From contig NIVC01000157.1 of assembly GCA_002269645.1 (NCBI GenBank), positions 248,001 to 312,000 on the forward strand: a DNA stretch of 64,000 nt. The letters run 5' to 3'. A model generated the notes under the pieces. The model had not been told where the DNA came from, made no database searches, and saw nothing but the letters and a program-made list of their open reading frames with translations. Positions within the stretch are counted from its first letter, which is position 1. The number at the start of each line of letters is the position of its first letter. The translations under genes and the position numbers were made by a program. This document shows, in pieces, positions 6,256 through 60,755 of the stretch. Origin of the DNA: Macrostomum lignano (lineage: Eukaryota).

Positions 6256-6264
6256 CTTCTCAAG

Positions 6265-12066: not shown

Positions 12067-13839
12067 CCGCAGACGAATTGCCCGCCGAGAATTGCCCGCG
12101 GAGATTTGCCCGCAGTTTGCCGGCGAGCGAGTTGCCCGCGAAATTTTCTCTCGTGAAGGTTTGCCCGCAATACGTCAGTTTGAGGCAGGGATCTGACTCT
12201 AACTGGTTTTAACCCCCCCCCCTGCGCCGGCCTGGCCTCGCTTTGGTGGGTTGGTGGGGTGCTGGTGCTCTGCGTGCGTGCAGGGCTAGGGCAGCCTCCC
12301 CCTCCGCTCTGTGCTTTTTAGTCACGCGTCGCGGCCGCTGAGTCGGCGTAATTTTGGCAAAATATTTTTGGCATTGCCTTCCCAATGCTTAGTGTAAATA
12401 TAACATGTAAATCTTAATAAAGAGATTAAAAAAAACGTTTTGATAGTAACTGCATATCAAATGCATATTTTTTTTTGGGGGGGGGGCAATTCAGACAGAA
12501 TCTAGCTGCCAAATGCGCTGCAGTAAAGAAGCATTGCGGGCGGGTAAATCTCATGGACCCCTGCAACCCGGTTGTGGATCCAGAAAATTTTAAAGACGGG
12601 GCGCAGACTACTATAAGGTGCATGTTCATGCATACCATGTACATTCATGTGTGCATGATAATGTGTATTTTTCATATAAAAAATAAGAAATCAAACTCAA
12701 CGGAGGGCTGCCTCTTCCCTCCTCTGGAAGCATTCAGACCTGCATGCAGCCCAACACAGGAGAGGGATGAGAAAGATGAGAGCGAGAGGGAAGGAGTTAG
12801 GGGCCGGATGCAATGCCAGATCATCAAGAGCCTTTGGGACCGGATCTGGCCCTGAAGTGCACTGTACAGTCACTATTGTTAGTAATCCTTAGAAAAATTA
12901 TGTTCAAAGCAAAAACCATCGGCCTGTAATCTTAGGGCTTAGCTCTGATTCTCCCTTTGCTTATTCAAATTTAGTGCATGTGCCCTTGCCTGTTTTGGTA
13001 GGCTGGATGCTGCAGTGCATGGGGCAAGGTCTGGGCCTTTGTGAGTGCCTCTCACCTGCCCTGCCCTGTGCTCTGAGTTGGTCAGGGTGCCTCCCCGGGT
13101 GCTGCACCCTCTTCCCCAGGCGGTGTTTTGATTAGCTTATCCGGTGGGGTCGTCTGCCCCCCCCCCAGGCCTGTGCTGGTATCGATCGTGTTGCGCCCTT
13201 TCTCGCACTGCGCCTTCTTGCTTCACTATTATTCTCCTCGCGTCCGCTTTTCTTGTGTGACAGCGGTCTGGAGTAACTCTCCAAGTCAGTTTCAGTTAAA
13301 GTTAAAAGCAGAAGATAGACTTACAGTAAATAGACATCACCTGTTGAAGCCAGAGAAGCCAAAGCCAGTTAAGCACCTCTCTGCAGACCAGCGAGCAAAA
13401 TCAAATAAGAAGTCCAATAAACGCGCGTCCGGTAACTAGGCCACTGGTAAGCCGCCTGCTTCCTGGGGAGGCTTGTAAGTTGGCTACAGTGAATTCTTGC
13501 CAGAGCGTCATAACGCTGGAAGAGCATATACCAAACTTTACTTATACTTATACTGTACCACTGAATAAGCACAAGAGAGTGTCGCAACACCTCTGGGAGC
13601 AACTTGGTACTCAGAGCATCTTAGCGCCTGTCAGCAGTAATACCGCATTGGCAGAGCATCACAACGCCTGCTGGTACAGCCTTAGGGTACTTGGGCTGGG
13701 CACCCGAACCGACCCGGGTCCACTATACAAAAACTTCTGTACGGGGGGCGCTGATTGCTGGCCAGGAATTTCGATTGGGGGCGGGCAGGTTGGCTTGGCT
13801 GGCCAAGCCTCATGCAATTGTCACTTTTGGCGACGCAGG

Positions 13840-15016
13840 CACTCATTTTAGCGCCACAGGCACTCATTTTAGCGCCACAGGCACTCATTTTAGCGCCGCA
13901 GGCACTCTTTTTGGCGCCGCAGGCACTCATTTTAGCGCCGCAGGCACTCATTTTAGCGTCACAGGCACTCATTTTAGCGCCGCAGGCACTCATTTTAGCG
14001 CCGCAGGCACTCATTTTAGCGTCACAGGCACTCATTTTAGCACCGCAGGCACTCATTTTAGCGCCGCAGGCACTCATTTTAGCGTCACAGGCACTCATTT
14101 TAGCACCGCAGGCACTCATTTTAGCGTCACAGGCACTCATTTTAGCGCCGCAGGCATTCATTTTAGCGTCACAGGCACTCATTTTAGCACCACAGGCACT
14201 CATTTTAGCGTCACAGGCACTCATTTTAGCAGGCATTCATTTTAGCGCCGCAGGCACTCATTTTAGCAGGCATTCATTTTAGCGCCGCAGGCACTCATTT
14301 TAGCAGGCACTCATTTTAGCGCCACAGGCACTCATTTTAGCGTCACAGGCACTCATTTTAGCGCCGCAGGCATTCATTTTAGCGCCGCAGGCACTCATTT
14401 TAGCGCCGCAGGCACTCATTTTAGCAGGCACTCATTTTAGCGCCACAGGCACTCATTTTAGCGTCACAGGCACTCATTTTAGCGCCGCAGGCATTCATTT
14501 TAGCGCCGCAGGCACTCATTTTAGCGCCGCAGGCACTCATTTTAGCAGGCACTCATTTTAGCGCCACAGGCACTCATTTTAGCGTCACAGGCACTCATTT
14601 TAGCGCCGCAGGCACTCATTTTAGCGCCACAGGCACTCATTTTAGCGCCGCGGGCACTCATTTTAGCGTCGCAGGCACTCATTTTAGCACTTCAGGCACA
14701 CATTTTAGCGCCGCAGGCACTCATTTTAGCGCCACAGGCACTCATTTTAGCGTCACAGGCACTCATTTTAGCGCCGCAGGCACTCATTTTAGCGCCACAG
14801 GCACTCATTTTAGCGTCACAGCCACTCATTTTAGCGCCGCAGGCACTCATTTAAGCGCCGCAGGCACTCATTTTAGCGCCGCAGGCACTCATTTTAGCGC
14901 CGCAGGCACTCATTTTAGCACCGCAGGCACTCATTTTAGCGTCACAGGCACTCATTTAAGCGCCGCAGGCACTCATTTTAGCGCCGCAGGCACTCATTTT
15001 AGCGCCGCAGGCACTC
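13840..15016 (+). repeat. 21-bp minisatellite (GGCACTCATTTTAGCGCCGCA), about 55 copies
   Basis: Read directly; explains ORFs 13682..14282. The GC-rich flanks resemble MITE ends. Confidence 0.95.
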
Positions 15017-15811
15017 AATTGCCTCATGGTTTTGGGTACCCGCCGCGCCCAACCCCACTCCCAGGCGATTAGAGGGGGGCGGCCCCCCTTGGCTAAGCCA
15101 CTGCTATTCTGTGCTATTAACCATGAGTCTGACTCAGTCCTACCTAATTGCTATTCACTGACAGGTGCGACACCGATTCAAAGAAATGCGTTGTGGATTC
15201 CTGGAAAACCAGTGGCCAATGCCGGAAGTCGAGAGAAACAGAAATTTGAAATCTACTATAAAAAATATAGCGGAATATATTATACAGCTGGAGCAAAGTG
15301 CTGGCTTTGCTAAAATAATAAATTATGTAAAAAACACGCTGCACATGTGTCTCGTTCACTATGAGAATCAGAACTTCGTTCATGTAAATCTCAACAGAAA
15401 ATACAGAATGATTTTGAGACCCATAGAAATGAACGACTGCAGCCCCTACGTGTGCATGCAGGTGTATGAACGCTCACACGAACGCGGACCGACGCTCAAG
15501 AAGCACAAACGTTTTCTAAACTTATCAGGGACGCCAAGAAAAATTGAAAAAAATTTTAAGGAAATATCTACCGGTTATCCGCAAGAAAAAGCAACAGTCA
15601 ACTGGTTCTTCAAACGAGCAGAGAAAGCGACCGTCCCCGGCTAAATCGTGGCACCAAAAAGACTAAAAACAATTGATGAACCAAACTCTGACATGAATTT
15701 ATTTTTATTAGTTTTTCATTTCAATTTCTATAAACTCATTTATAGTTAAATCGTACAGCAAGGAGTTCTTTGATGGCATCTATTATTGTTCTCGTTAGTT
15801 TTGCTTTTTTG

Positions 15812-21915: not shown

Positions 21916-22689
21916 CTCAAAAATTAATCTATTCATGCTCAAATTCTCCTCAAAAACTCCGGAATCAGAACTCCATCGGGTTTACTATTGAATCCCAAAT
22001 TAAATTCACTCATTAAAAATCCAACAATAAAATTTAGTCAGATCTTCAAATTTCAGGAAAATATTTATTTAAGCTTTTATCATCCCGATAGTTTCCCAAG
22101 AACACCAACTGACTCCAGCATTCCCTCTGGATTCACTGCACTTTTTCATCCCAACGCGCTTTCATCGCTCAAACGCAGAAGGATCGGAAATTAAAAGAAG
22201 ATCGCCTGGCGCAAATAAGCAGAGAGATTGATGGTGGACCTCCCGACTCCAGTAGACATGGCCCCCGGGTCCCCCGCACTTACCGGTTATTGACCTGTCA
22301 ATTTACCAGGGTATTGGAGCGGGCAGTGCTAAACTGGCACGCACCAGATGTTTGTCTATTTATATTCCACTCTGGGTAAGTTGGCCATCTGCCTTTATCT
22401 TAATTCAATATTACCTGGGAGGCTGCGCGATGATGGAGAGTCCTACGAGTGGCTGATGATGTCGGCTATATGGTTTTTTGTGTAATCTATACTCCATTCT
22501 GGGCAACCAGATAACGCCTTGTTGTAGCGGCAGTGGAGTCTGTTTTGACTGGGAGAGGGAAAAACAAGTTCCTCTTTTGACTGAGAGCGAAACAGATTGA
22601 CATGAAGGTTAAGCATGCATGGCTGCGGTTAGTCGTCAATAGTTATATTATTAGGCTGATAAGAGCGAGAGTAGACTGGGGTAAGAGGG

Positions 22690-22757
22690 AGAGAGACGGG
22701 ATGAGAAGGAGAGAGACGAGGGTGAGATGGAGAGATGAGGATGAGGGAGAGAGACGA

Positions 22758-22823
<66 letters not shown>

Positions 22824-24030
22824 CGAGAGAGAGGGAGAGAGACGAGGGAGAGAGACAGGATGAGAGAGGAAGAGAGACAGTGTGAGAGGGAGAGAGAGGG
22901 TGAGAGGGAGAGAGACAGGGTGAGAGGGAAAGAGAAGAGGGTGAGAGGGAGAGAGACAGGATGAGAGAGGGAGAGAGACAGGGTGAGAGAGAGACAGGGT
23001 GAGAGACAGACAGGGTGAGAGAGAGACTAAGTGAGAGAGAGAGACAGGGTGAGAGACAGACAGGGTGAGAGAGAGAGAGACAGGGTGAGAGAGAGAGACA
23101 GGGTGAGAGGGAGAGAGAGGGTGAGAGGGAGAGAGACAGGGTGAGAGGGAAAGAGAATAGGGTGAGAGGGAGAGAGACAGGATGAGAGAGGGAGAGAGAC
23201 AGGGTGAGAGAGAGACAAGGTGAGAGACAGACAGGGTGAGAGAGAGAGACTAAGTGAGAGAGAGAGAGACAGGGTGAGAGAGAGAGACAGGGTGAGAGAG
23301 AGAGACAGGGTGAGAGAGAGAGAGACAGGGTGAGAGAGAGACAGGGTGAGAGAGAGACAGGGTGAGAGAGAGAGACAGGGTGAGAGAGAGACAGGGTGAG
23401 AGAGAGAGACAGGGTGAGAGAGACAGACAGGGTGAGAGAGAGAGAGACAGGGTGAGAGAGAGAGACAGGGTGAGAGGGAGAGAGAGGGTGAGAGGGAGAG
23501 AGACAGGGTGAGAGGGAAAGAGAATAGGGTGAGAGGGAGAGAGACAGGATGAGAGAGGGAGAGAGACAGGGTGAGAGAGAGACAAGGTGAGAGACAGACA
23601 GGGTGAGAGAGAGAGACTAAGTGAGAGAGAGAGAGACAGGGTGAGAGAGAGAGACAGGGTGAGAGAGAGAGACAGGGTGAGAGAGAGAGACAGGGTGAGA
23701 GAGAGAGAGAGAGACAGGGTGAGAGAGAGAGACTAAGTGAGAGAGAGAGACAGGGTGAGAGAGAGACAGGGTGAGAGAGAGAGACAGGGTGAGAGAGAGA
23801 GACAGGGTGAGAGAGAGAGACAGGGTGAGAGAGAGAGAGACAGGGTGAGAGAGAGACAGGGTGAGAGAGAGACAGGGTGAGAGAGAGAGACAGGGTGAGA
23901 GAGAGAGACAGGGTGAGAGACAGGGTGAGAGAGAGAGACAGGGTGAGAGAGAGAGACAGGGTGAGAGAGAGAGACAGGGTGAGAGAGAGAGACAGGGTGA
24001 GAGAGAGACAGGGTGAGAGAGAGACAGGGT

Positions 24031-24061
<31 letters not shown>

Positions 24062-25310
24062 TGAGAGAGAGACAGGGTGAGAGAGAGAGACAGGGTGAGA
24101 GAGAGAGAGAGACAGGGTGAGGGAGAGAGACAGGGTGAGAGAGAGACAGGGTGAGAGAGAGACAGGGTGAGAGAGAGAGACAGGGTGAGAGAGAGAGACA
24201 GGGTGGGTGAGAGAGAGAGACAGGGTGAGAGAGACAGGGTGAGAGGGAGAGAGACAGGGTGAGAGAGAGAGAGAGAGAGAGACAGGGTGAGAGAGAGACA
24301 GGGTGAGAGAGAGAGACAGGGTGAGAGAGAGAGACTGGGTGAGAGAGATACAGGGTGAGAGAGAGACAGGGTGAGAGAGACAGGGTGAGAGAGAGACAGG
24401 GTGAGAGAGAGACAGGGTGAGAGAGAGAGACAGGGTGAGAGAGAGAGACAGGGTGAGAGAGAGAGAGACAGGGTGAGAGAGAGACAGGGTGAGAGAGAGA
24501 CAGGGTGAGAGAGAGAGACAGGGTGAGAGAGAGAGACAGGGTGAGAGACAGGGTGAGAGAGAGAGACAGGGTGGGAGAGAGAGACAGGGTGAGAGAGAGA
24601 GACAGGGTGAGAGAGAGAGACAGGGTGAGAGAGAGAGAGACAGGGTGAGAGAGAGAGACAGGGTGAGAGAGAGAGACAGGGTGAGAGAGAGAGACAGGGT
24701 GAGAGAGATAGAGACAGGGTGAGAGAGAGACAGGGTGAGAGAGAGAGACAGGGTGAGAGAGAGAGAGACTGGGTGAGAGAGATACAGGGTGAGAGAGAGA
24801 CAGGGTGAGAGAGAGAGACAGGGTGAGAGAGAGACAGGGTGAGAGAGAGACAGGGTGAGAGAGAGAGACAGGGTGAGAGAGAGAGACAGGGTGAGAGAGA
24901 GAGACAGGGTGAGAGAGAGAGAGACAGGGTGAGAGAGAGAGACAGGGTGAGAGAGAGAGACAGGGTGAGAGAGAGAGACAGGGTGAGAGAGAGAGACAGG
25001 GTGAGAGAGATAGAGACAGGGTGAGAGAGAGAGACAGGGTGAGAGAGAGACAGGGTGAGAGAGAGAGACAGGGTGAGAGAGAGACAGGGTGAGAGGGAGA
25101 GAGACAGGGTGAGAGAGAGACAGGGTGAGAGAGAGACAGGGTGAGAGAGAGAGACAGGGTGAGAGAGAGAGAGAATGGGTGAGAGAGAGACAGGGTGAGA
25201 GGGAGAGAGACGGGATGAGAAGGAGAAAGACGAGGGTGAGATGGAGAGATGAGGATGAGGGAGAGAGACGAGGGAGAGAGAGAGAGAGAGGGAGAGAGAG
25301 AGAGAGAGGA
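22690..25310 (+). repeat. GA-rich compound satellite ((GA)nCAGGGT)
   Basis: Read directly; explains the SLSHPV-type ORFs. Confidence 0.95.
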
Positions 25311-26832: not shown

Positions 26833-27449
26833 TAGTGAGAGAGAGACAGGGTGAGAGAGAGAGACAGGGTGAGAGAGAGAGAGAATGGGTGAGAGAGAGA
26901 CAGGGTGAGAGGGAGAGAGACGGGATGAGAAGGAGAAAGACGAGGGTGAGATGGAGAGATGAGGATGAGGGAGAGAGACGAGGGAGAGAGAGAGAGAGAG
27001 AGACGAGGGAGAGAGACAGGATGAGAGAGGAAGAGAGACAGGGTGAGAGGGAGAGAGAGGGTGAGAGGGAGAGAGAGAGAGACAGGGTGAGAGACAGGGT
27101 GAGAGAGAGAGAGAGAGAGACAGGGTGAGAGGGAGAGAGAGGGTGAGAGGGAGAGAGACAGGATGAGAGAGAGAGAGAGACAGGGTGAGAGAGAGAGAGA
27201 CAGGGTGAGGGACAGGGTGAGAGGGAGAGAGAGGGTGAGAGGGAGAGAGACAGGGTGAGAGGGAAAGAGAATAGGGTGAGAGGGAGAGAGACAGGATGAG
27301 AGAGGGAGAGAGACAGGGTGAGAGAGAGACAGGGTGAGAGAGAGACAGGGTGAGAGAGAGACAGGGTGAGAGAGAGACAGGGTGAGAGAGAGAGAGACAG
27401 GGTGAGAGAGAGACAGGGTGAGAGAGAGAGACAGGGTGAGAGAGAGAAA

Positions 27450-27490
<41 letters not shown>

Positions 27491-28512
27491 TGAGAGAGAG
27501 ACAGGGTGAGAGAGAGAGACAGGGTGAGAGAGAGAGAGAGAGACAGGGTGAGAGGGAGAGAGAGGGTGAGAGGGAGAGAGACAGGGTGAGAGGGAAAGAG
27601 AATAGGGTGAGAGGGAGAGAGACAGGATGAGAGAGGGAGAGAGACAGGGTGAGAGAGAGACAGGGTGAGAGAGAGAGACAGGGTGAGAGAGAGAGACAGG
27701 GTGAGAGAGAGAGACAGGGTGAGAGAGAGAGAGAGAGACAGGGTGAGAGAGAGAGAGAGAGAGACAGGGTGAGAGAGAGACAGGGTGAGAGAGAGAGAGA
27801 GAGACAGGGTGAGAGAGTGAGACAGGGTGAGAGAGAGACAGGGTGAGAGAGAGACAGGGTGAGAGAGAGAGAGAGAGAGAGAGACAGGGTGAGAGAGAGA
27901 CAGGGTGAGAGAGAGAGACAGGGTGAGAGAGAGAGACAGGGTGAGAGAGAGAGACAGGGTGAGAGAGAGACAGGGTGAGAGAGAGACAGGGTGAGAGAGA
28001 GAGAGAGAGAGACAGGGTGAGAGAGAGACAGGGTGAGAGAGAGAGACAGGGTGAGAGAGAGAGAGAGAGACAGGGTGAGGGAGAGAGACAGGGTGAGAGA
28101 GAGACAGGGTGAGAGAGAGACAGGGTGAGAGAGAGAGAGAGAGAGACAGGGTGAGAGAGAGACAGGGTGAGAGAGAGACAGGGTGAGAGAGAGACAGGGT
28201 GAGAGAGAGAGACAGGGTGAGAGAGAGAGACAGGGTGAGAGAGAGAGACAGGGTGAGAGAGAGAGAGAGAGAGAGACAGGGTGAGAGAGAGACAGGGTGA
28301 GAGAGAGACAGGGTGAGAGAGAGAGACAGGGTGAGAGAGTGAGACAGGGTGAGAGAGAGACAGGGTGAGAGAGAGACAGGGTGAGAGAGAGAGAGAGAGA
28401 GAGACAGGGTGAGAGAGAGACAGGGTGAGAGAGAGAGACAGGGTGAGAGAGAGAGACAGGGTGAGAGAGAGAGACAGGGTGAGAGAGAGACAGGGTGAGA
28501 GAGAGACAGGGT

Positions 28513-28543
<31 letters not shown>

Positions 28544-29068
28544 TGAGAGAGAGACAGGGTGAGAGAGAGAGACAGGGTGAGAGAGAGAGAGAGACAGGGT
28601 GAGGAGAGAGACAGGGTGAGAGAGAGACAGGGTGAGAGAGAGACAGGGTGAGAGAGAGAGAGAGAGAGAGACAGGGTGAGAGAGAGACAGGGTGAGAGAG
28701 AGACAGGGTGAGAGAGAGACAGGGTGAGAGAGAGAGACAGGGTGAGAGAGAGAGACAGGGTGAGAGAGAGAGACAGGGTGAGAGAGACAGGGTGAGAGAG
28801 AGAGACAGTGTGAGAGAGACAGGGTGAGAGAGAGAGACAGGGTGAGAGAGAGACAGGGTGAGAGAGAGAGACAGTGTGAGAGAGAGAGACAGGGTGAGAG
28901 GGAGAGAGACAGTGTGAGAGAGAGAGACAGTGTGAGAGAGACAGGGTGAGAGAGAGAGACAGGGTGAGAGAGAGAGACAGGGTGAGAGAGAGAGACAGTG
29001 TGAGAGAGACAGGGTGAGAGAGAGAGACAGGGTGAGAGAGAGACAGTGAGAGAGAGATGAGAGAGACT
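26833..29068 (+). repeat. GA-rich compound satellite ((GA)nCAGGGT), second block
   Basis: Read directly. Confidence 0.95.
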
Positions 29069-29915: not shown

Positions 29916-30368
29916 GAATACCCTATAGAGTCTCCATAGACTTACAGTTTTTACGTAAAGCTATGATGAACTAAAAGTGGCTTTTAGTGCACTGCACAGC
30001 CGAACCGCACAAGGCATTCCTTGCGCAAAAGCAGCTGGCTCAGAAATGAAACAGTGTTGGCTCGCCTCCGTTGCCAAGCAAAATTACCAACTCAATTCAA
30101 AAATTTATTAACGGCTGTAATTCAAATTCAGCTCCTGCTTGCTCACTTTCGTGTTACCGGATCCGCCATCGCGGAGGCGGCCAGAGTCGGGTCGTGGGGT
30201 TTTATTTGCGCTTCCGGAATGCCGCGCTCGTAAAAAGCTTGCAGTTCAATCAGTTTTATAGACTGGATTAGCATAATTAGCATTGAGATGGGGCTGAGAG
30301 TCTGCGAGCGCCTCAGCATTGCCTTCTTATTTATGACTGCCTGGCACCATCCGCTGCGACTGCTGATT

Positions 30369-31225
<857 letters not shown>

Positions 31226-31619
31226 CATCTTTTCTATTAAATCTTGTGACAAAAATGTATCTCTTTAAATCATTTTTAGCTTCTTCATTTTTTTTTCGTT
31301 AGTCCAGTTTGAGTGGGGAAACAGGATTTTAATGAGATCCATGTAATGCGTGACAACCACGCTTCATTAGCCTCGACTTTCGACAGGTCGTCAGCCTCGT
31401 CAAAAAGCTGATTTCAAAATTTTTCTATTAGATTGTAAAATTCTGAACCTGTTTGCGCGTGAAGCTTTCTAGACAAGCTCGGCACAGCGGGAGTTGACGC
31501 CAGGGCATTCTTGAACATTTTTGAGCTGGTTCTGCCCTGCTGGGAGGGGCATCGTGGAATTGAAAAAAAGTAAGCTGGGCGTTTTATTCAAATTATTTTC
31601 GGAGTGTGCACGTTAGACA

Positions 31620-34010
31620 AGAGTGTACATATTAGATAGGATTGTACATGTTAGATAAGTGTATTTGTTAGATAGGAGTGTACATGTTAGATAGGAGTGT
31701 ACATGTTAGATAAGAGTGTACATGTTAGATCAAAGTGTACATGTTAAAGAGTGTACTTGTTAGACAGGAGTGTACATGTTAGATAGGAGTGTACATGTCA
31801 GATAGGAGTGTACATGTCAGATAGGAGTGTACATGTTAGATAGAAGTGTACATTGAGATAAGAGTGCACATGTCAGATTGGACTGTACATGTTAGATAAA
31901 GTGTACATGTTAGATAGGAGTGTACATGTTAGATAGGAGTGTACATGTTAGATAGGAGTGTACATGTTAGATAGGAGTGTACATGTTAGATAGGAGTGTA
32001 CATGTTAAAGAGTGTACTTGTTAGACAGGAGTGTACATGTTAGATAGGAGTGTACATATTAGATAGGAGTGTACATGTTAGATAGGAGTGTACATTGAGA
32101 TAGGAGTGTACATGTTAGATAGGAGTGTTCATGTTAGATAGGAGTGTTCATGTTAGATAAGAGTGCACATGTCAGATTGGACTGTACATGTTAGATAAAG
32201 TGTACATGTTAGATAGGAGTGTACATGTTAGATAGGAGTGTACATGTTAGATAGGAGTGTACATGTTAGATAGGATTGTACATGTTAAAGAGTGTACTTG
32301 TTAGACAGGAGTGTACATGTTAGATAGGAGTGTTCATGTTAGATAAGAGTGCACATGTCAGATTGGACTGTACATGTTAGATAAAGTGTACATGTTAGAT
32401 AAGAGTGTACATGTTAGATAGGAGTGTACATATTAGATAGGAGTGTACATGTGAGATAGGAGTGTACATTGAGATAGGAGTGTACATGTTAGATAGGAGT
32501 GTTCATGTTAGATAAGAGTGTTCATGTTAGATAAGAGTGTACATGTTAGATAAGAGTTTACATGTTAGATAGGAGTGTTCATGCTAGATAGGAGTGTACA
32601 TGTTAGATAGGAGTGTAAATGTTAGATAGGAGTGTACATTGAGATAGGAGTGTACATGTTAGATAGGAGTGTATATGTTAGATAGGAGTGTACATGTTAG
32701 ATAGGAGTGTACATGTTAGATAGGAGTGTACATGTTAGATAGGAGTGTACATTGAGATAGGAGTGTAAATGTTAGATAGGAGTGTACATGTTAGATAAGA
32801 GTTTACATGTTAGATAGGAGTGTTCATGTTAGATAAGAGTGTACATGTTAGATAAGAGTGCACATGTCAGATTGGACTATACATGTTAGATAAAGTGTAC
32901 ATGTTAGATAGGAGTGTACATGTTAGATAGGAGTGTACATGTTAAAGAGTGTACTTGTTAGACAGGAGTGTACATGTTAGATAGGAGTGTTCATGTTAGA
33001 TAAGAGTGCACATGTCAGATTGGACTGTACATGTTAGATAAAGTGTACATGTTAGATAGAAGTGTACATGTCAGATTGGACTGTACATATTAGATAGGAG
33101 TGTACATGTGAGATAGGAGTGTACATTGAGATAGGAGTGTACATGTTAGATAGGAGTGTTCATGTTAGATAAGAGTGTTCATGTTAGATAGGAGTGTACA
33201 TGTTAGATAGGAGTGTACATGTTAGATAGGAGTGTACATGTTAGATAAGAGTTTACATGTTAGATAGGAGTGTTCATGTTAGATAAGAGTGTACATGTTA
33301 GATAAGAGTGCACATGTCAGATTGGACTATGCATGTTAGATAAAGTGTACATGATAGATAAGAGTGTGCATGTTAGATATGAGTGTATATGTTAGAGAGG
33401 AGTGTACATGTTAGATAAAGTGTACATGTTAGATCAAAGTGTACATGTTAGATAGGAGTGTACATATTAGATAGGAGTGTACATGTGAGATAGGAGTGTA
33501 CATTGAGATAGGAGTGTACATGTTAGATAGGAGTGTTCATGTTAGATAAGAGTGTTCATGTTAGATAAGAGTGTACATGTTAGATAAGAGTTTACATGTT
33601 AGATAGGAGTGTTCATGTTAGATAGGAGTGTACATATTAGATAGGAGTGTACATGTGAGATAGGAGTGTACATTGAGATAGGAGTGTACATGTTAGATAG
33701 GAGTGTTCATGTTAGATAAGAGTGTTCATGTTAGATAGGAGTGTACATGTTAGATAGGAGTGTACATGTTAGATAGGAGTGTACATGTTAGATAAGAGTT
33801 TACATGTTAGATAGGAGTGTTCATGTTAGATAAGAGTGTACATGTTAGATAAGAGTGCACATGTCAGATTGGACTATACATGTTAGATAAAGTGTACATG
33901 ATAGATAAGAGTGTGCATGTTAGATATGAGTGTATATGTTAGAGAGGAGTGTACATGTTAGATAGGAGTGTACATGTTGGACAAAAGTGTACATGTTAGA
34001 AACGATTTTG
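31620..34010 (+). repeat. 19-bp minisatellite (GTTAGATAGGAGTGTACAT) with higher-order variant blocks
   Basis: Read directly. Confidence 0.95.
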
Positions 34011-34477
34011 CATGTTAGACAGAATTTTTGACACATAAGAAACTCCTACGAAGGTTGTTTTTATATATATTTTTCTTAAGATGCAAATGCTATAATTATT
34101 TAAAACGATGAGAAACCTCATGAGTCATTTTACAATGTCAAAAACATTGCAGTCGGATATTTTGCCCTGCCGTCCTGTATCGAGGCAAGTCTGTTGACTT
34201 TTAGACTCAAATCTGTGCCGAGAGTCGAGAAGGCGTCTCTGCAGCCAAGATTTTTTATTGCTGTTTCCTCATCTTTCAAGGCTAATTTTAGAATTTTGGA
34301 ATAATATCCCATATCCTGTCAGGAACCAGCCCGTGGAGGAACGGGTCAGGACACGTGTAGGCGGCCACCACCAGATCCATATTTGGCCATCAGATCAAAC
34401 CAGACCTAGATCGGCAGATCCTTGATGAGGCGATTCTAAATATCCTATCGATTGCGCATTGCTGGCAAGGAGGTTCT

Positions 34478-34503
34478 GATTGGCTGGCCGAATGCTCTAT
34501 AAA
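34478..34503 (+). promoter_or_regulatory. Putative core promoter of the YWPGMW prohormone gene (inverted CCAAT ATTGG near 34478; TATAAA 34498-34503)
   Basis: Motifs lie about 100 bp upstream of the ATG at 34604. Confidence 0.5.
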
Positions 34504-34603: not shown

Positions 34604-35645
34604 ATGACAACTCTTGGAAAGTAAGCTGGCTTTTATTTTTTACTTTTTCACTTCGTTTTGCTCAGTTTCACCAGATTCTGCTAACCGATTTTTCACTCGG
34701 CTCTCATAAATGAGCGTTTTTGTTCGGACCTGTAGGCCCCATGACCAAGAGAAACTGTTTGCGGCATCGCTGCATTAGGGCAGCCATTCAAGAATGCCAT
34801 TGCGCTGAGTTGCCATGCAGTTTCTGTGTGGTTGCTATGCGGTTTCCATGCAGTTGCTATGCTGTTGCTATGCGGTTTCCATGCAGTTGCTATGCAGTTG
34901 CTGTGCGGTTGCTGTACCGTTACTATTCAGTTGCTATTCAGTTGCTATTCTGTTGCTATGCGGTTTCCATGCAGTTGCTATGCTGTTGCTATGCGCTTTC
35001 CATGGGGTTGCTATGTAGTTGCTATGCTTTTCCCATGCCGATGCTATATGCCATTACCATGCAATTTCTACGCGGTTAATATACAGTTACTTTTCAGTTG
35101 TAATGCGGTTGCTATGCGGTTTCCATGCTATTTCAAACTTAATCTCGAACGCATCGGTTCGCCACTCTACCCTGCTCAGGCCGCAGACAGTCCGCCTGGC
35201 CGCTCCGCTGGCTCTGCTCCTGCTGTACACCATCTGCTTCTGCGCCAAACCAACGGCCGGTCTGCCAGCTTCCGCCAGCCTGATGGAGCGCCGAGCCAGC
35301 TACTGGCCGGGCATGTGGCAGTTCGACCGAAGCGACGGCGGCGGCTACGGGGAGCGCTACTACGACTACTACGGCGGGGCCAGGTACGCCAAGCGAGGCT
35401 ACTACTGGCCGGGCATGTGGAACTTCGATCGCTACTACGACGAGAGCTCGCCACTGGAGGGCAAGCGCGCCTACTACTGGCCTGGCATGTGGCGTTACCA
35501 GCAGCGCCGGCCGTCCAAGCGGTCCTACGGCTACGGCAACGACCATCCGTACTGGCTGGGCAAAGCCTGCGGCGAGACTGGCGACCCCGCCGCCTGCAGC
35601 ATCCTGAACGGCCTGCACAACAACTATTATTACTACTATGATTGA
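34604..35645 (+). CDS. Secreted prohormone-like protein, 160 aa, with three YWPGMW repeats and a C-terminal Cys-pair peptide; exons 34604-34620 and 35180-35645
   Basis: ATG ACA ACT CTT GGA AA|GTAAGC ... CTCAG|G joins in frame to give MTTLGKPQTVRLAAPLALLLLYTICFCAKPTAG (signal-like), then RR-ASYWPGMWQFDR, KR-GYYWPGMWNFDR...G-KR-AYYWPGMWRYQQ-RR, KR-SYGYGNDHPYWLGKACGETGDPAACSIL...YYYYYD*. Codon usage is GC-rich like the other exons. Confidence 0.85.
34810..35130 (+). repeat. Degenerate GTTGCTAT-based repeat in the prohormone intron, also present at 35845-36050
   Basis: Read directly; explains the Cys/Tyr-rich ORFs 34720..35079, 34815..35018 and 35972..36157. Confidence 0.8.
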
Positions 35646-36384
35646 GCAGTTCTTGCTATCTTGGTTGGTTTCATCTTATAGACAAACCTTTTGGAGGCCG
35701 ACAAGTTCTACGTATTGTATCGTGTGTCGTTTTCTCCGAATGTCATCAACCCCACCAACACCAAACGGTTTTGTGCGTCTCTGAGCTTGGCGTTTCTATT
35801 TTAACGGCATGTTGCGGTAACAGCGAACTGTATCTGTACTGTCCCTATGCTGTTGCTATGCCGTTGCTAGGCTATTGCCACCTAGATACTATAATTAATG
35901 TATTTGTCTTACAATTTTGGCTTTTGTCACTTAGCTATTGCAGTATGTAGTAGCAGCACATACTCATACAATTGCTATGCTGTTGCTGTGCAGTTGCTAT
36001 GCAGTTGCTATGCCGTTGCTATGCTATTGCTATGCTGTTGCTATGCAGTCGATATATATCGTTTCAGTCCATCTCAGCTGTTATTTTCCCATGTTTCTTT
36101 GAAGTCAGTGCGTTATTCCCCTGCAGGTATCGAAGCGATCAGGAAGATCCGGATTGATCAGTGATCAGGAAAATTTGATCAGGACAGACTGTTTTGTTAA
36201 TCCTTAATCCTAACATTCGCGCATATTATCCTATATCACACCCTGCGAGACTGCACTACCCATGTAGACTCCTGTAATAACTGTTGAGTGTCTCATTATT
36301 CGGAAAAATATATATACCACTCCATAAAATTTGAATTGTCAAAATCCATTCATTTATTTATTTATTTATTATAAATTTAGAGCG

Positions 36385-39756: not shown

Positions 39757-42115
39757 TCACCAGAAGTGACACTTGTCATTATCAGTCAGGTACATTGGAT
39801 CTCCCGGCTTGCATTTGAACACCCTGGCGAAGTCCTTCGACTGCATCACCTGACCGTTCACTCTGGGATGCGGAGGCGAGTGACGCTTACCCTTGAATAC
39901 AGAGATCAGGGTGTTCTTTTCCGCCTTTGTGCAGAGCAGCTGAGCATTGTGGATGAAGAACAGCTGATCCGGTGTCAGCCCCGCCAGCTTCTCTCCTGGA
40001 ATCAGCCGAGACCGCCTCCCAGACTTTGCCGCACTGCTTCTGTAGGCTCGGAATGCGGAATTGATGCCAACAATATCGGCAAAATTTTCGTCAAACTTCC
40101 GCACTCCTGCATTCATTGAATTGTCCCAAATGTCAGATTTTGCAAACTCAGGATCGATGATCTGGTTGTAGAAATCTGCCAGACATTGAGATTGCTTGTC
40201 ATACCGCAGCGCTGTGACATTGTCAAATACACCTATCTGTTCCTCTCCAACGCTAATTTTTTTATTGCCTAATTTGTCAAAGGCGTGCCCGACCTCGTGG
40301 CCGACTGTGCCGCCGATGCCTCCGTACAGCAGGCAGTCGGGGTAGCCCTTCATGTAGACTTTGGTGAGCAGCAGGCCCAGGTAGATGAAGAGCGAATTCA
40401 GGTGTAGCGAGTAATGAGCGTTGACAGTAAACATTCTTGAAAAAATGTCACTCGGCATTAAGTCCTGTTTGTCAGCTGTCAAAATCCAAAGTCGATTCTG
40501 AAGCTGAGTGCTTTTAAACTGCAAAACAACATCGCCAAATGTTCTGCTTTGGTTAACTTGAGCAGCAACGTTTGAGTAGCCTTCGGTGAACTCGGACATG
40601 TTGAACTGGGGGTAGCCGACGGTGCTCCGAATGGCGTCGAGCTTCTTCTTAATTGCTGCCTTACTCGGCTGCTCAATCCACGCCTCGCTGTCCACATTCT
40701 CCCACATGGCCTCCTTGATGTCGCCGATTACCACTTTCACTGAGTTGAAGTCGTCTGTGACGAAGGCGCTGCTGAACATCTGCAAAGCCACTGGCGGCAT
40801 GGAGCCCAGCATCATGTCCATGCACAGTCTTGAGCTGTTCCGGCCTTCTTTCTCATGAATGAGATACTTTTGTTGCCCGAAAAGGTTTTTAAAGAATTTG
40901 AACGATTCGTCTGGAAGAAAATTGACTGCCGACAGTGCAGAGTCCAGGAGAATAAAGTCGTAGTACGGTCCCTGTCTGTGCTCCAGCTCCGTTGTGAGCT
41001 GCTCGAGTACAAAAAATAATAGCGGGTACCTAATAATCTTGACTCTCATTGAGGGAGGTAACTTATTGGCTGAATACTTGCTCACAGCGCTGTAAAACTC
41101 CGTCCAGTTAAAGTTGAGATTTTCTGCCTCAAACTGAGTAAAATTCTGCAGCTGTTCCAGATGGTAAGGACCAACTTTCAAATACGATTCGCCTTTGTTT
41201 AACATTTGCTGAACTGCAGGCTTTATCTGATTTATACTAACAGTCAAATTCAGGTCTATGAGATCACTGAAATCTTCTAATGCAGAAATTCCGTCATTGA
41301 AAACCTTATTCCAGGATTTCAGGGTAAATAGGTAGTATGGTGACGAGTGCAATCTCAGACTCCGCTCCACCGAGCCTGGCGACAATCTGAACAGATCCGA
41401 TGTACCGGATATCACCAGTCTCGCTAGGAAGTCTTCGATGCCTGAGTAGCCCTCTAGAAAGTCCAACAAAGGTCTCACTAATGATTTCATGTCGAAAGGT
41501 CGTTCTCCAGTCTGCCAGCTGTTCGGGAGAAATTCCTCTTTCTTAGAATTCAGAACGCTGGAGCCGCGCCAATCCATGCAGGTCCCGTAGATGGATCGCA
41601 GAGTCTGGAACAGCTGCGCTTCGCTTGCGTCTCTGGGCTTGGACAAGTTCTTGAAGTACATCATCTCAAATAGATTTCCTTGAATGGAGTTGTCCTCCTG
41701 TAGTACTGAGCCCACGGTCTCGGCGGTGAAGGGGTGGCTTTTATGGAAACCGCCGCAGGCGAAGCTGTAGAAGTCTTGGCATGGGTCCGCAGATCGGTCG
41801 ATGTGGCTCTGCAGCAGTGCGCTTGCACTTATGCAGGCCTCGCTGGTGCACAGGCTGGGATGCTTGGGAGTGGCTGCTCCAGGTGGTAACCGAGCTGTGC
41901 TGAGAGCGTAGAGCAGAACGAAAACTAGAAGCAGAATTGACAGAACCGCAATCAGCAAGAGCATAAGCAGGCGTCTTGCTCGATCCAGTCGAGTTGAAAA
42001 CTCAACTCTGCCGCCATCGAGAATGCTCTGTTGGCAATGCAGCGATTTGAGGGTGGGGTTAATCCAGTTTGACTGTCTGACAGATGGAATTTCCCAATGA
42101 AAATGTTCTTACCAT
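39757..42115 (-). CDS. M13 (neprilysin/ECE-like) zinc metallopeptidase, type II membrane protein, about 757 aa; exons 42115-42113 (ATG only) and 42027-39757
   Basis: 735-aa ORF with TM anchor LLLIAVLSILLLVFVLLYAL, C-x4-C and DPCQDFYSFACG, VNAHY, GHEVGHAFD (HExxH), DENFADIVG (third Zn ligand), HSPPHPRVNG and terminal F.C.PGDPM...KCHFW. ATG|GTAAGA at 42115 and CAACAG| at 42028 give an 85-bp phase-0 intron adding the cytoplasmic tail MSILDGGRVEFSTRLDRARRLL. Confidence 0.93.
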
Positions 42116-55207: not shown

Positions 55208-58200
55208 TCAAATGTCCATCTTTTTCATTCGCTCCATCAGCAACTCTACAGCCCGGTCATTCTCCTCCTTGGACAGAACCGGCTGCCTCTCGCCGCGACC
55301 CCCTTGGTAGCTCTGTGGGATGGGAGCGAATCTTGCTGTTTCTACTTTTTCCCTATGAAAATGAAATGGGAACTTGAAAACAAATCAAAGAATAGTGTAC
55401 AAGTCAGCAAGAAGCAGTGCTGCGAGAAGACGTGGCTTTTAAATTTCTTGCTTTAACCATAGTGGTATATTAGCTTTGGCTGGTGAACTTTTTTTGACAG
55501 AAAGCTTTGCAATTTTAGAACACAGACATGAGGTTCTAGGATGGCTATTAGTGAGTCAAGATAACTCAGACTGAGATACAGATATTTACTCATGCAGCGA
55601 CAATGCTCTCAGGTGATGTGATCGTGAGTAGCCCTTTTATCTGAAACAGAGTTAAGAAAAAGTACATAATATCGCTTAAAACATGTTTTGCTTTGAGGCA
55701 GATGGCCTCTATTTTTAAAGACAAGACGCACATGTACTTTTAAAAGCACTTGTCGAGAATAAGATCGAATACTTGAAATCAAATTTTAATTTCTAGGATA
55801 GAGTAGTGGCACATAAAAGAATCTTAGATAGTAGCGGCACATCAAAGAATCTTAGATAGTAGCGGCACATCAAAGAATCTTAGATAGTAGCGGCACATCA
55901 AAGAATCTTAGATAGTAGCGGCACATCAAAGAATCTTAGATAGTAGCGGCACATCAAAGAACCTTAGATAAAAGCGGCACATCAAAGAATCTAGGATAGT
56001 AGCGGCACATCAAAGAATCTTAGATAGTAGCGGCACATCAAAGAATCTAGGATAGTAGCGGCACATCAAAGAATTTATCAAACTCACCACGCTGAAGGGC
56101 CTCGGGTTGAGACTCCGGGCGCTGGAACGAGCGCTGCTCATCCGTGACAAGGAGTGCTGGCCGTGCGCCTGTAGAATTCAGTTCGCACTTAATCATAAAT
56201 CATAATTACTCCGGAAAAATTTCGTAAAAAAATGATAATTGCGTATTACTCCTACCTCGGAATCCCATTCAAGATCCTCTTCATTCTCGCATTGGTTGAG
56301 AGCGGCCAGGTATTCTAAATGCGATAAATTAACGCATAATTTAGTAACAAATTGTTTGAGAACAATAATGTGTAAGGCAGGTGTCTTGACTCCCATTAGT
56401 TCAAGGACAACACTCGACACTAATGGATCGAGAGTCCCTGTAGCTATGCAAGTTCCGCGATCAACCATCCGTCTTTTCGAGTCTTTTCGAGTAGCTCTCT
56501 TAATATCCCAGCTTACGCCTAGTTCGAGACTTGACTCACAAAACTAGTTAAAAGACAGTTTTTACCTTTCTAGAACTGAGGTGTTGGATTCATGGGTTGC
56601 TGTGCCGCACCAGAGAGTCCCTCTTGCACGCACGCGACAGTGATGATATCAATCAAGATTAACTCAGCCTGAATAAATTGACATTTTACCCCCAAATAGA
56701 GCAATATGAAGTCCCTAATTCTCTTTTTCTACCTAATTCTAGTTCTCGATTAAATTCCATATCATAATCCCCAGTCTCACCCTTGCGCTTCTTGGGGTTG
56801 ATGATGCGAAAGATGCGAATCAGGCTGGCGCTGTCCTCCAGACCCGCGCCCCCGAAGATGTAGCACATGTGCCGGTGTATCCAGGCACCGTGGTGGATCA
56901 GGTTCTCCGGCTGCCCACCAGACGCTGGCAGAGCCGACGGCACCTTCCAAGTCCGCTTGTAGAGGCTGAACTTCATCAGCGGCTCCTGGACCGGGCCGCC
57001 ATCCGGGAACACGCAGTCGTTGTAACCCCCGAATAGGAACAGGTCCTTGAACTGGTGCGCGGTGAGGCTGTGCCCGGCTCGCGGCATCGGCAGCAGGTGA
57101 CCCTCGACTGGGACGCGCGACCACTGCAGGGTGGCTGCAGAAATCGGGAAATTATTCTGAATTGGCTACTGTAAGTAGAGGCCATTTGAACTTCAGCGCT
57201 TTCGATGCTTTATGAAGATTCAACTGACTGGAAAATATGGTATTTAGTTCAGCTGGAATCCATGCTAATGAAGCTGGAATCCATGCTAATGAAGCTGGAA
57301 TCCATGCTATTGAAGCTGGAATCCATGCTAATGAAGCTGGAATCCATGCTAATGAAGCTGGAATCCATGCTAATGAAGCTGGAATCCATGCTAATGAAGC
57401 TGGAATCCATGCTAATGAAGCTGGAATCCATGCTAATGAAGCTGGAATCCATGCTAATGAAGCTGGAATCCATGCTAATGAAGCTGGAATCCATGCTAAT
57501 GAAGCTGAAATCCATGCCATTTAAGCTGGTAACCATGCTAATGAAGCTGAAATCCATGCTAATGAAGCTGGAATCCATGCTAATGAAGCTGGAATCCATG
57601 CTAATGAAGCTGGAATCCATGCTAATGAAGCTGAAATCCATGCCATTTAAGCTGGTAACCATGCTAATGAAGCTGGAATTCATGCTAATGAAGCTGGAAT
57701 CCATGCTAATGAAGCTGGAATCCATGCTAATGAAGCTGGAATCCATGCTAATGAAGCTGGAATCCATGCTAATGAAGCTGGAATCCATGCTAATGAAGCT
57801 GGAATCCATGCTAATGAAGCTGGTAACCATGCTAATGAAGCTGGAATTCATGCTAATGAAGCTGGAATCCATGCTAATGAAGCTGGAATCCATGCTAATG
57901 AAGCTGGAATCCATGCTAATGAAGCTGGAATCCATGCTAATGAAGCTGGAATCCATGCTAATGAAGCTGGAATCCATGCTATTGAAGCTGGAATCCATGC
58001 TAATGAAGCTGGAATCCATGCTAATGAAGCTGGAATCCATGCTAATGAAGCTGGAATCCATGCTAATGAAGCTGGAATCCATGCTAATGAAGCTGGAATC
58101 CGCAATTTTGAACGTGCGGGGTCCATCTAGCTCAACCGTCAAGAACAGTTGACAAACACACATACATGCATCATCTCTGTGAGTCCCTGGCTATGAAACT

Positions 58201-60755
58201 ATTCATCCACTTTTTCCTTGTCTTTGAGTACCGGGGCCACTCACCAGTGTCCAGCTGGTGCAAGTCGTTGTAAAAGCAGCCCTGACCTCCGGTGCCTCCG
58301 AACACGTACAGGCTCTGTCCCACCGCAGCGGCCGCGTGTTCGCATCTGGGCGACGGCGGCGCGCCGCTGACCGTTGCCCGGTGCCAGTGCTGCGCCATGA
58401 TATCGTACACAAACGTCGTATTGCTAAGGACGCCGTTGCTATGGCCGCCGAATACAACAAGCTGCGATTCGATCATGTTGCTGGTGTTGTACACCTGCTC
58501 GGGCTCCTCTCCGCTGGCCTTGACGTGGGTCCACTTGCGCACCACTGCAGAGTTTATTTGCAGATTTTTGGGCTTTTCAACTTCGGAATGAAAAATTTAA
58601 GGATATCAACTCGGCTTTTAATACCTTAGGGGCGTCGATACCAGAGGCGCCAGCACCAGAGGCGCCAGCACCAGAGGCGCCAGCACCAGAGGCGCCAGCA
58701 CCAGAGGCGCCAGCACCAGAGGCGCCAGCACCAGAGGCGCCAGCACCAGAGGCGCCAGCACCAGAGGCGCCAGCACCAGAGGCGCCAGCACCAGAGGCGC
58801 CAGCACCAGAGGCGCCAGCACCAGAGGCGCCAGCACCAGAGGCGCCAGCACCAGAGGCGCCAGCACCAGAGGCGCCAGCACCAGAGGCGCCAGCACCAGA
58901 GGCGCCAGCACCAGAGGCGCCAGCACCAGAGGCGCCAGCACCAGAGGCGCCAGCACCAGAGGCGCCAGCACCAGAGGCGCCAGCACCAGAGGCGCCAGCA
59001 CCAGAGGCGCCAGCACCAGAGGCGCCAGCACCAGAGGCGCCAGCACCAGAGGCGCCAGCACCAGAGGCGCCAGCACCAGAGGCGCCAGCACCAGAGGCGC
59101 CAGCACCAGAGGCGCCAGCACCAGAGGCGCCAGCACCAGAGGCGCCAGCACCAGAGGCGCCAGCACCAGAGGCGCCAGCACCAGAGGCGCCAGCACCAGA
59201 GGCGCCAGCACCAGAGGCGCCAGCACCAGAGGCGCCAGCACCAGAGGCGCCAGCACCAGAGGCGCCAGCACCAGAGGCGCCAGCACCAGAGGCGCCAGCA
59301 CCAGAGGCGCCAGCACCAGAGGCGCCAGCACCAGAGGCGCCAGCACCAGAGGCGCCAGCACCAGAGGCGCCAGCACCAGAGGCGCCAGCACCAGAGGCGC
59401 CAGCACCAGAGGCGCCAGCACCAGAGGCGCCAGCACCAGAGGCGCCAGCACCAGAGGCGCCAGCACCAGAGGCGCCAGCACCAGAGGCGCCAGCACCAGA
59501 GGCGCCAGCACCAGAGGCGCCAGCACCAGAGGCGCCAGCACCAGAGGCGCCAGCACCAGAGGCGCCAGCACCAGAGGCGCCAGCACCAGAGGCGCCAGCA
59601 CCAGAGGCGCTAGCACCAGAGGCGCCAGCACCAGAGGCGCCAGCACCAGAGGCGCCAGCACCAGAGGCGCCAGCACCAGAGGCGCCAGCACCAGAGGCGC
59701 CAGCACCAGAGGCGCCAGCACCAGAGGCGCTAGCACCAGAGGCGCTAGCACCAGAGGCGCTAGCACCAGAGGCGCCAGCACCAGAGGCGCCAGCACCAGA
59801 GGCGCCAGCACCAGAGGCGCCAGCACCAGAGGCGCCAAAAACAAAATAATCACGCATTAGGAAACTGAAAAAATGGGAACAGAGGCGCCTCAACTGCTGC
59901 ATGGGTCGATAAATCAGCTGTCAGAAGAGCGCCATAATTTAAGCCAGCCAATTGAGAGGGGCCGTGACCCCCTTGCGGCTAGGCTACGTCTCTGCATGGC
60001 CTTATATTAGTCCTTGACATTGTACGGTAAGTGTAGCGCTTATGAGGGTCATACTGCATACAATTTCATATCATTGAAATGCAACACTAGAATTGCTTAC
60101 AAACGTCGAACTGGTAGGTTCCGGGAATGCAGGAGGCCTCATTAAGATTGCTCTTGCCGCCAAACAGGATTAATAAATTCTCGAATAGGCTGGAATTAAA
60201 AAAATACATTGTTAAAAATATATTTTTTTTCGTTCTGTCAATGACAGTTCTTAAGTTCAGATTTGTATTTTTCTGGTTGATAAAGTTGTGATAAAGTTAG
60301 CAAATTTACTACTACAAATAGTGCAAAAGGGGGCACTTACTGCAAGTGGTGATAGGCCCTGGCCTCAGGCACGTCTCCATGCCCTGACGAAATTTTCACA
60401 CATTTTAATCTTTGACTATCCTGAACTGAAAAAATGAATTTTATGATGCCAGCTGATAAGGAAGGTTATGTATAAATTCTTTTAAGATATTTGTCCATCT
60501 TTGAAAGCATTACTGCACAGAAATTTAATAATCAATTTAGTCCAATGTACCTGAGATTTTCCAGATGTCGTTGTAGAATGTGATTTTCTTTCCAGACTGG
60601 AAAATTGCAAAAACCAGATCAAAGTAAGGAATTTCCGCAGGAATGCATTAAGCAAGAAATTCTATCTTCAAAAATGTATTCTTACCTTCGAAAGCTTGAA
60701 CCCTCCGTGCAAATACAAATCATTATTCCTAGTCTCCGTTATAGCTGTGTTGTGT
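55208..60755 (-). CDS. Kelch-repeat beta-propeller protein (RABEPK/KLHDC-like), 5'-partial; exons 60755-60686, 60596-60551, 60425-60341, 60189-60101, 58544-58245, 57134-56781, 56168-56088, 55311-55208
   Basis: Phase-compatible GT-AG joins give HNTAI...LYLHGGF..FYNDIWKI...GDVPEARAYH...LILFGG..YQFDVLVRKW...LVVFGG...PSPRCEHAAAAVGQSLYVFGG...YNDLHQLDTATLQW...PMPRAGHSL...LFLFGG...CYIFGG...AVELLMERMKKMDI*: six kelch repeats plus a tail. The start exon was not located. Confidence 0.88.
55795..56075 (+). repeat. 28-bp tandem repeat (GATAGTAGCGGCACATCAAAGAATCTTA), intronic
   Basis: About 10 copies read directly. Confidence 0.9.
57250..58100 (+). repeat. 21-bp minisatellite (AAGCTGGAATCCATGCTAATG), intronic
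   Basis: Read directly; explains ORFs 57152..58163. Confidence 0.95.
58638..59836 (+). repeat. 15-bp minisatellite (CCAGAGGCGCCAGCA), about 80 nearly identical copies, intronic
   Basis: Read directly; explains ORFs 58577..59902 and 58618..59853. Confidence 0.97.

Follow-up and report, generated by a model that had tools for sequence, protein, structure and literature searches.

Gene structure and transcript support

The window analysed here is a stretch of 64,000 nucleotides of contig NIVC01000157.1 from Macrostomum lignano (assembly GCA_002269645.1, Mlig_3_7), and it carries on its forward strand the gene Mlig013514, whose product may be a secreted precursor from which peptides of a hitherto undescribed family are cut. 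The gene opens with an ATG at 34604 in a first coding exon of 17 nucleotides (34604..34620, + strand; ATGACAACTCTTGGAAA, read as ATG ACA ACT CTT GGA AA) which provides residues 1–5 and two bases of codon 6. This is followed by an intron (34621..35179, + strand) which begins with the donor GTAAGC, consists mostly of an 11-bp tandem repeat at 34808–35121, and ends in CTCAG, where the acceptor reads ..CTGCTCAG, or in a longer form ...CCCTGCTCAG, immediately before the first G of the next exon. Coding exon 2 (35180..35645, + strand) includes the stop codon TGA at 35643–35645, and the spliced coding sequence of 483 nucleotides translates into a protein of 160 residues. An in-frame stop codon is found nine codons 5' of the ATG, and a TATAAA sequence (34498..34503, + strand), present in the same form in all three genomic copies of the locus, lies some 100 nucleotides 5' of the ATG and may serve as the core promoter. 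The GC (guanine plus cytosine) content reaches 64.6% in exon 2 but is lower in the intron (45.4%) and across the whole window (45.8%).

Aligned with the GenBank model BOX15_Mlig013514g1, which is annotated in M. lignano as a "hypothetical protein", the spliced product shows 100% identity at 100% coverage, and the window itself matches one of the three copies of the locus exactly (referred to below as L002). The GenBank annotation of this assembly was built from RNA sequencing (RNA-seq) only, using genome-guided StringTie/TACO assembly, a de novo transcriptome, and TransDecoder to predict the open reading frames (ORFs; Wudarski et al. 2017, PMC5730564), and because the matching model was constructed solely from such transcripts, the 34620/35180 junction has transcript support. 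Mlig013514 is thus a real and transcribed M. lignano gene which had already been annotated as a hypothetical protein, and the two-exon model with a 17-nucleotide first coding exon and a 160-residue product, proposed in an initial annotation of this DNA made from the sequence alone, is exact. That annotation also implied a lophotrochozoan origin, in agreement with the identity between the product and the M. lignano protein, from which it follows that the source of the gene is a free-living macrostomid flatworm.

Architecture of the predicted precursor

The 160-residue product is laid out as MTTLGKPQTVRLAAPLALLLLYTICFCAKPTAGLPASASLMERR-ASYWPGMWQFDRSDGGGYGERYYDYYGGARYA-KR-GYYWPGMWNFDRYYDESSPLEG-KR-AYYWPGMWRYQQ-RR-PS-KR-SYGYGNDHPYWLGKACGETGDPAACSILNGLHNNYYYYYD. 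The start of its N-terminus is encoded by exon 1 and the rest of a signal-type segment, residues 6–33, by the beginning of exon 2 (35180..35261, + strand). This segment includes a hydrophobic core, LALLLLYTICFC, with a mean Kyte-Doolittle hydropathy of 2.59, preceded by K/R and followed by sites conforming to the (-3,-1) rule at residues 27 and 33, so that the candidate signal-peptidase sites are CFC/AKP and TAG/LPA. We judged signal segments by these heuristics (hydropathy and the (-3,-1) rule) throughout, and by the same means analogous signal-type N-termini were recognised in the three relatives described below, the transcript from run SRR30276804, UniProt A0A1I8HFB1 and the protein P0005.

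Downstream of the signal-type segment are three units, each preceded by a dibasic site and each containing the hexamer YWPGMW. Unit 1 (residues 45–76; 35295..35390, + strand) consists of ASYWPGMWQFDR and a Tyr/Gly-rich spacer between RR43-44 and KR77-78, with the hexamer at 35301–35318. Unit 2 (residues 79–100; 35397..35462, + strand) is made up of GYYWPGMWNFDR and YYDESSPLEG between KR77-78 and KR101-102, and unit 3 (residues 103–114; 35469..35504, + strand) is AYYWPGMWRYQQ between KR101-102 and RR115-116, so that in context the three read ERR-ASYWPGMWQFD, KR-GYYWPGMWNFD and KR-AYYWPGMWRYQQ-RR. A C-terminal peptide, SYGYGNDHPYWLGKACGETGDPAACSILNGLHNNYYYYYD, follows KR119-120 (residues 121–160; 35523..35642, + strand) and contains the C-x8-C pair Cys136 and Cys145 (CGETGDPAAC, 35568–35597), which are probably joined by a disulfide bond, before the protein ends in NNYYYYYD. 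The signal-like segment, the three KR/RR-preceded units, the C-x8-C pair and the poly-Tyr tail of the initial annotation are therefore all present at these positions. The repetition of YWPGMW is not due to chance, as shuffling the protein 200,000 times gave a six-residue string in triplicate in just 4 cases (these were uninspected and probably arose from Tyr runs).

Two features of the sequence concern amidation. There is no Gly before the basic sites that follow any of the cores, and the cores are thus predicted not to be amidated; as for the other parts of the precursor, we speculate that amidated by-products might arise from the GKR following ..SSPLE and from a GK, also conserved, within YWLGKAC. 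The product appears to have no recognisable folded domain, with no match in the PDB at E≤10, a single spurious Pfam match at E=9.3, and an AlphaFold (AF2) model with a mean predicted local distance difference test (pLDDT) score of 37.9, which was built from an alignment of two sequences only and is weak evidence on the fold.

Sequence constraint on the gene and its product

The assembly contains three copies of the Mlig013514 locus (L001, L002 and L003), as is to be expected because M. lignano is a hidden polyploid. A comparison of the three copies found 25 substitutions in the 600 bp upstream of the gene and 18 substitutions plus 162 gap columns in the intron (the gene span of L003 is 154 bp shorter), while exon 1 is identical in all of them and exon 2 differs by four substitutions, at 35240, 35312, 35411 and 35495. 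Each of these four is at a third-codon position in the forward frame, and the three copies consequently encode the same protein, with no amino acid change over 483 nucleotides where we estimate that about 14 would be expected at the flanking rate of approximately 4%. Mlig013514 is under purifying selection, given that the coding sequences of the three copies differ at just four third-codon positions. We also considered an antisense ORF at 35139–35618, and this was rejected as the four inter-copy differences fall at its first codon positions and at third positions in the forward frame.

A word-indexed search recovered one relative (P0002, E=2.4e-22), located on a 926-nucleotide intronless Logan contig of run SRR30276804 (L004). 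This transcript encodes a complete precursor of 166 residues, MATSLSRTAACLVLAVLAVALSPCVASPTGWAVERR-ASYWPGMWHFNR..KR-GYFWPGMWHFSR..KR-GYFWPGMWQYRR..KR-ATFWPGMWRHRQ..RR-SSYMYERYWLGKACGETGDLYACSVLNGIFDY, having four units compared with the three of M. lignano and again with dibasic residues immediately 5' of each. The C-terminal block, YWLGKACGETGD..ACS.LNG, is identical at 18 of 22 residues with five synonymous codon differences and retains the C-x8-C pair, and in the core block of unit 1, the 15 codons comprise five which are identical, eight which are synonymous and two which change the amino acid. Taking the four conserved blocks together, 32 of the 65 codons are identical between the two precursors, 20 are synonymous and 13 are amino-acid-changing, whereas the spacers are of unequal length and cannot be aligned. 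As synonymous codons outnumber residue changes in the blocks while the spacers are unalignable, the constraint acts on the protein rather than the DNA and coincides exactly with the predicted peptides and the sites at which they would be cleaved, and conserved blocks separated by diverged spacers are the classic prohormone pattern. It should be noted that positions 1–7 of the contig are CCGATCT, which resembles the end of an Illumina adapter, and the 5' end of the contig is presumably a library artefact.

Homologs and the limits of the family

When 1.84 billion representative proteins were searched exhaustively with HMMER, a profile made from the M. lignano and SRR30276804 sequences returned five proteins at E<1e-3, two of which were the query sequences themselves. 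Among the other three was P0003 (E=3.7e-10), which is UniProt A0A1I8HFB1, a second M. lignano gene. Its product has a signal-type segment, MAQPGMLISVSFAILVLMLVTNGTHG, followed by KR-GYYWPGMWNFRNAD in 4.5 or more identical copies, each a KR-flanked 14-mer, and this count is a lower bound as the sequence record ends within the repeats. The first ten residues of unit 2 are identical to this repeat unit, and A0A1I8HFB1 is evidently a multi-copy paralogue of Mlig013514. (Its automatic UniProt name, "Salivary secreted protein", is a name only and has no evidential value.)

A further match, P0005 (E=2e-4), is a 312-residue ORF whose product begins with a signal-type segment. It lies in European Nucleotide Archive (ENA) assembly ERZ25070786, on a eukaryotic contig of 18 kb and 40% GC, and has a paralogue, P0006, on a separate contig of the same assembly. 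The two loci in this AT-rich eukaryote, L015 (9560–10663) and L005 (8752–9690), each have seven KR-preceded units, including KR-AYYWRGVKNHRW, KR-AYYWPGVKKYED and KR-AYFWPQVWRD, and these are mostly of the YYW[PR]G[VI]KNHRW type. The units of L015 are scattered across three reading frames, which could reflect frameshifts, the presence of short introns, errors in the assembly or decay of this copy. Fragments of retroelements are also found on the contig of P0005. The remaining HMMER match, P0004 (809 residues, E=1e-5), was rejected as spurious because it is an unrelated long repeat which lacks dibasic-YYWPG units.

No further family member was identified at E<1e-3 among the 1.84 billion proteins, and a profile of concatenated units, searched with filters off, recognised every family member at E<1e-15. 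A search of Joint Genome Institute (JGI) metagenomes for two WPGMW-coding copies 33–63 nucleotides apart produced nine matches, all of which were simple repeats or chance occurrences on GC-rich prokaryote-like contigs. Without exception, KR or RR immediately precedes the cores of the family (three in M. lignano, four in the SRR30276804 transcript, at least 4.5 in A0A1I8HFB1, and seven each in L005 and L015), and the family-wide core can be written as a dibasic site followed by [AG]-x-[YF]-W-[PR]-G-[MVI]. The W-x3-W motif highlighted in the initial annotation holds for Macrostomum-type units but is confined to those genes and is not a signature of the family as a whole.

These comparisons also bear on where the peptides would end. 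An Arg is conserved at position 11–12 of nearly every Macrostomum-type unit, and the 11-residue peptides proposed earlier, ASYWPGMWQFD and GYYWPGMWNFD, have the correct sequence but uncertain termini, as ends at ..QFD and ..NFD would require a cut at a single Arg. This residue may simply belong to the peptide, since the unit of A0A1I8HFB1 which extends from one KR to the next is GYYWPGMWNFRNAD.

Comparison with known peptide systems

Mlig013514 appears to belong to none of the named peptide families. This agrees with the earlier statement that it matches no known family, which was sustained in Pfam, the PDB, the exhaustive HMMER search and the searchable literature, where neither the family motifs nor Mlig013514 had a relevant match. 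In general architecture it is similar to the planarian npp and spp prohormones (Collins et al. 2010, PMC2953531) and to spiralian precursors generally, being small, with a signal peptide, KR/RR-delimited repeats, divergent spacers and no folded domain, and occurring in a species which has a homologue of prohormone convertase 2 (PC2). Its peptide sequence, however, matches none of the planarian prohormones in the searchable part of their supplements, and it differs in having non-amidated cores which are conserved at the N-terminus. The strings YWPG, FWPG, YYWP, YYWR and WPGM do not occur in the searchable portion of the supplements to the planarian work, nor were the family motifs found in the main texts of the neuropeptidome papers of Thiel (2018 and 2021).

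The closest specific likeness in architecture is to luqin/RYamide precursors, in which N-terminal peptides are combined with a conserved C-terminal pair of Cys residues. The luqin-type spacing is usually ten residues, eight being reported for Caenorhabditis elegans alone, and the mature luqins carry RF-, RY- or RW-amide at their C-terminus (Yanez-Guerra & Elphick 2020, PMC7041311). In contrast, the spacing in Mlig013514 is eight residues rather than the typical ten (and is kept in the SRR30276804 relative), no core ends in R[FYW]-G-basic, the motif is YWPGMW instead of WRPQGRFamide, and no sequence similarity was detected using Pfam or the exhaustive HMMER search.

Further likenesses involve multi-copy precursors of short peptides with a conserved Trp, as in MIP/allatostatin-B, APGWamide and RGWamide. 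MIP peptides have the form W-x6-W-amide, whereas the units here are YWPGMW-x-[FY]-x-R with a W-x3-W spacing, or mostly W-x7-W in the AT-rich relatives, and compared with the Wamides, Mlig013514 has no amidation signal and its Trp is not C-terminal. Orcokinins and pedal peptides are also multi-copy, KR-flanked and non-amidated peptides of approximately 11–15 residues with a conserved N-terminal half, but here the likeness is architectural only, as there is no shared signature, profile or sequence match.

Probable function of the precursor

A hydrophobic N-terminus, repeated cores preceded by dibasic sites, variable spacers and the lack of a folded domain together constitute a prohormone-type anatomy, and the prohormone-like architecture recognised at the outset is reinforced by the Cys-loop block, the divergence of the spacers in the relative and the existence of a multi-copy paralogue. 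On balance, though with no great confidence, we consider Mlig013514 to encode a precursor which enters the secretory pathway and yields peptides of an undescribed family, most likely neuropeptides or peptide hormones that signal between cells. The best reading of the family would be that it is narrowly distributed, non-amidated and of prohormone type. Rather more tentatively, and with slightly less than an even chance of being correct in full, it may represent a new non-amidated signalling family, marked by the core dibasic-[AG]-Y-[YF]-W-P-G-[MVI] and occurring in macrostomids and at least one other invertebrate lineage, in which the Macrostomum-type genes encode a co-released disulfide-loop peptide (YWLGKACGETGD..ACS.LNG) and the receptor is an orphan.

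The processing we propose would begin with the N-terminal hydrophobic segment routing the protein into the secretory pathway, where the signal peptide would be removed near residue 27–33. Enzymes of the prohormone-convertase type would then cleave after RR44, KR78, KR102, RR116 and KR120, with the basic residues trimmed by a carboxypeptidase, to give predicted products of 32 residues (ASYWPGMWQFDR...), 22 residues (GYYWPGMWNFDR...) and 12 residues (AYYWPGMWRYQQ) as well as the dipeptide PS. The three larger products would be non-amidated peptides starting with [AG]-x-Y-W-P-G-M-W, possibly shortened at the conserved Arg 11–12 residues in, and would be co-released with a 40-residue C-terminal peptide bearing the Cys136-Cys145 loop. 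The conserved N-terminal cores and the loop peptide would be the active parts and the spacers disposable, with a neuropeptide or peptide hormone the most likely role. We note that the in situ pattern of the M. lignano PC2 homologue suggests nervous-system-specific expression, and that its knock-down in hatchlings is lethal (Arbore et al. 2015, PMC4490696).

Several points weigh against a signalling role. The cores have no amidation signal and are conserved at their N-terminal and not their C-terminal end, which in both respects is less usual for neuropeptides, and multi-copy, dibasic-flanked precursors are also a source of antimicrobial peptides, pheromones and the secretions of glands. In Mlig013514 the signal peptide was judged by heuristics alone, and neuronal expression and mature peptides are putative. 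The family is very small, at about five genes in three organisms, and comparative support is thin. The Mlig013514 identifier was not found in the searchable parts of the supplements of M. lignano expression papers, an uninformative result as some of these use other identifier schemes, and the supplements of the seminal-fluid screen contain no Mlig-format identifiers at all.

The same processing could take place in an exocrine gland (prostate, pharyngeal, epidermal or other) to produce a pheromone, a seminal-fluid allohormone or a defensive secretion released to the outside or into a partner, and we regard this as unlikely but as an alternative of some weight. A signal peptide and KR-flanked repeats fit it as well as they fit a neuropeptide, the family is narrowly distributed with fast-evolving spacers, and putative seminal-fluid proteins have been reported for M. 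lignano from an in situ screen (Weber 2018, PMC5977470). However, no evidence assigns the Mlig013514 transcript to a gland, and the strong constraint on the cores and C-terminal block fits receptor ligands, in our view, better than it fits reproductive proteins, which tend to evolve rapidly. The initial annotation had left open an adhesive or eggshell function based on 3,4-dihydroxyphenylalanine (DOPA). Here a Tyr/Gly-rich protein would act intact as an eggshell-granule or adhesive component after cross-linking through DOPA or dityrosine. Flatworm eggshell (vitelline) precursors are rich in Tyr and Gly, and so is the mature protein of M. lignano, in which Tyr makes up 17% and Gly 13% and which has the YYYYY tail, but this composition is not conserved, as beyond the conserved blocks Tyr accounts for 24.2% of the residues in M. 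lignano compared with 6.6% in the SRR30276804 relative, which is also missing the poly-Tyr tail. What is conserved instead are the dibasic-preceded cores and the Cys-loop peptide, which are not known to be features of eggshell or DOPA proteins, and the protein is small with three or four units, while A0A1I8HFB1 is composed of identical KR-flanked 14-mers. A structural role is weakened because the Tyr-richness is lineage-specific and confined to what would be the disposable parts, and it now seems quite improbable.

An antimicrobial or host-defence precursor giving rise to Trp/Tyr-rich peptides, which had also been left open, would fit units that are KR-flanked and present in several copies, and a composition rich in aromatic residues. 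The predicted cores, however, are near-neutral or acidic, with net charges of -1 for ASYWPGMWQFD, -1 for GYYWPGMWNFD and +1 for AYYWPGMWRYQQ, and are short and neither cationic nor amphipathic, and the mature protein has 16 K+R against 13 D+E, all of which makes such a function very improbable. It might be supposed that the gene is non-functional, a chance ORF or an artefact derived from repeats, given that the window is rich in tandem arrays which yield long spurious ORFs and that the intron is itself an 11-bp repeat. This we find hardly credible for a gene with a transcript-derived annotation whose genomic copies differ by synonymous changes only, which has paralogues, and for which a full-length, intronless and homologous transcript exists in another organism.

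What is new here is a small peptide family, the prohormone type of precursor being well known and the gene itself having been annotated as a hypothetical protein; whether its role is in signalling or exocrine, it adds one more orphan peptide precursor and not a new principle, lineage-restricted orphan precursors being common. M. lignano is a flatworm model which is transgenic and amenable to RNA interference (RNAi), and no catalogue of its peptide signalling molecules was found in the searchable papers. The family would supply ligands for receptor deorphanisation and a testable candidate for behaviour, reproduction and regeneration phenotypes, and were it exocrine or seminal, it would be relevant to research on sexual conflict in the genus Macrostomum. 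More generally, a conserved, multi-gene and non-amidated family of this kind could escape motif searches which are centred on amidated peptides.

Genomic surroundings

Approximately 4 kb downstream of Mlig013514 and convergent with it is a 735-residue ORF (39757–41964, - strand) with homology to the Peptidase M13 family, which includes neprilysin and endothelin-converting enzyme (ECE)-like proteins (PF01431, E=8.8e-39; PF05649, E=1.6e-21). A minus-strand M13 gene is also annotated downstream in copies L001 and L003 but was not called in L002, the contig of the window. M13 enzymes degrade neuropeptides in other animals, and one might speculate that this peptidase inactivates the Mlig013514 peptides, although the adjacency may be a coincidence which has been carried along by genome duplication.

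The 11-bp repeat of the intron (AGTTGCTATGC / TTGCTATGCAG; 34808–35121) occurs again just 3' of the gene, at 35850–36100, and its copy number varies among the three genomic copies, as seen in the 154-bp shorter gene span of L003 and a large indel near 36004. Different tandem arrays, some two dozen in number, with repeat periods of 4–47 bp and lengths of 0.3–2.6 kb each, tile the window, for example at 1–1191, 3065–4146, 5080–6256, 13825–15017 and 22685–25309, and further along at 26837–29062, 30368–31230, 31601–34019, 57251–58101 and 58640–59837. These arrays account for the extreme GC and AT skews at 22–30 kb and for most of the ORFs of at least 150 residues which have no Pfam match, and their density fits the 15% of simple and tandem repeats reported for the M. 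lignano genome. The window also contains a retroelement fragment, a 380-residue ORF (7986–9128, - strand) with reverse transcriptase and RNase H domains (RVT_1 and RT_RNaseH_2).

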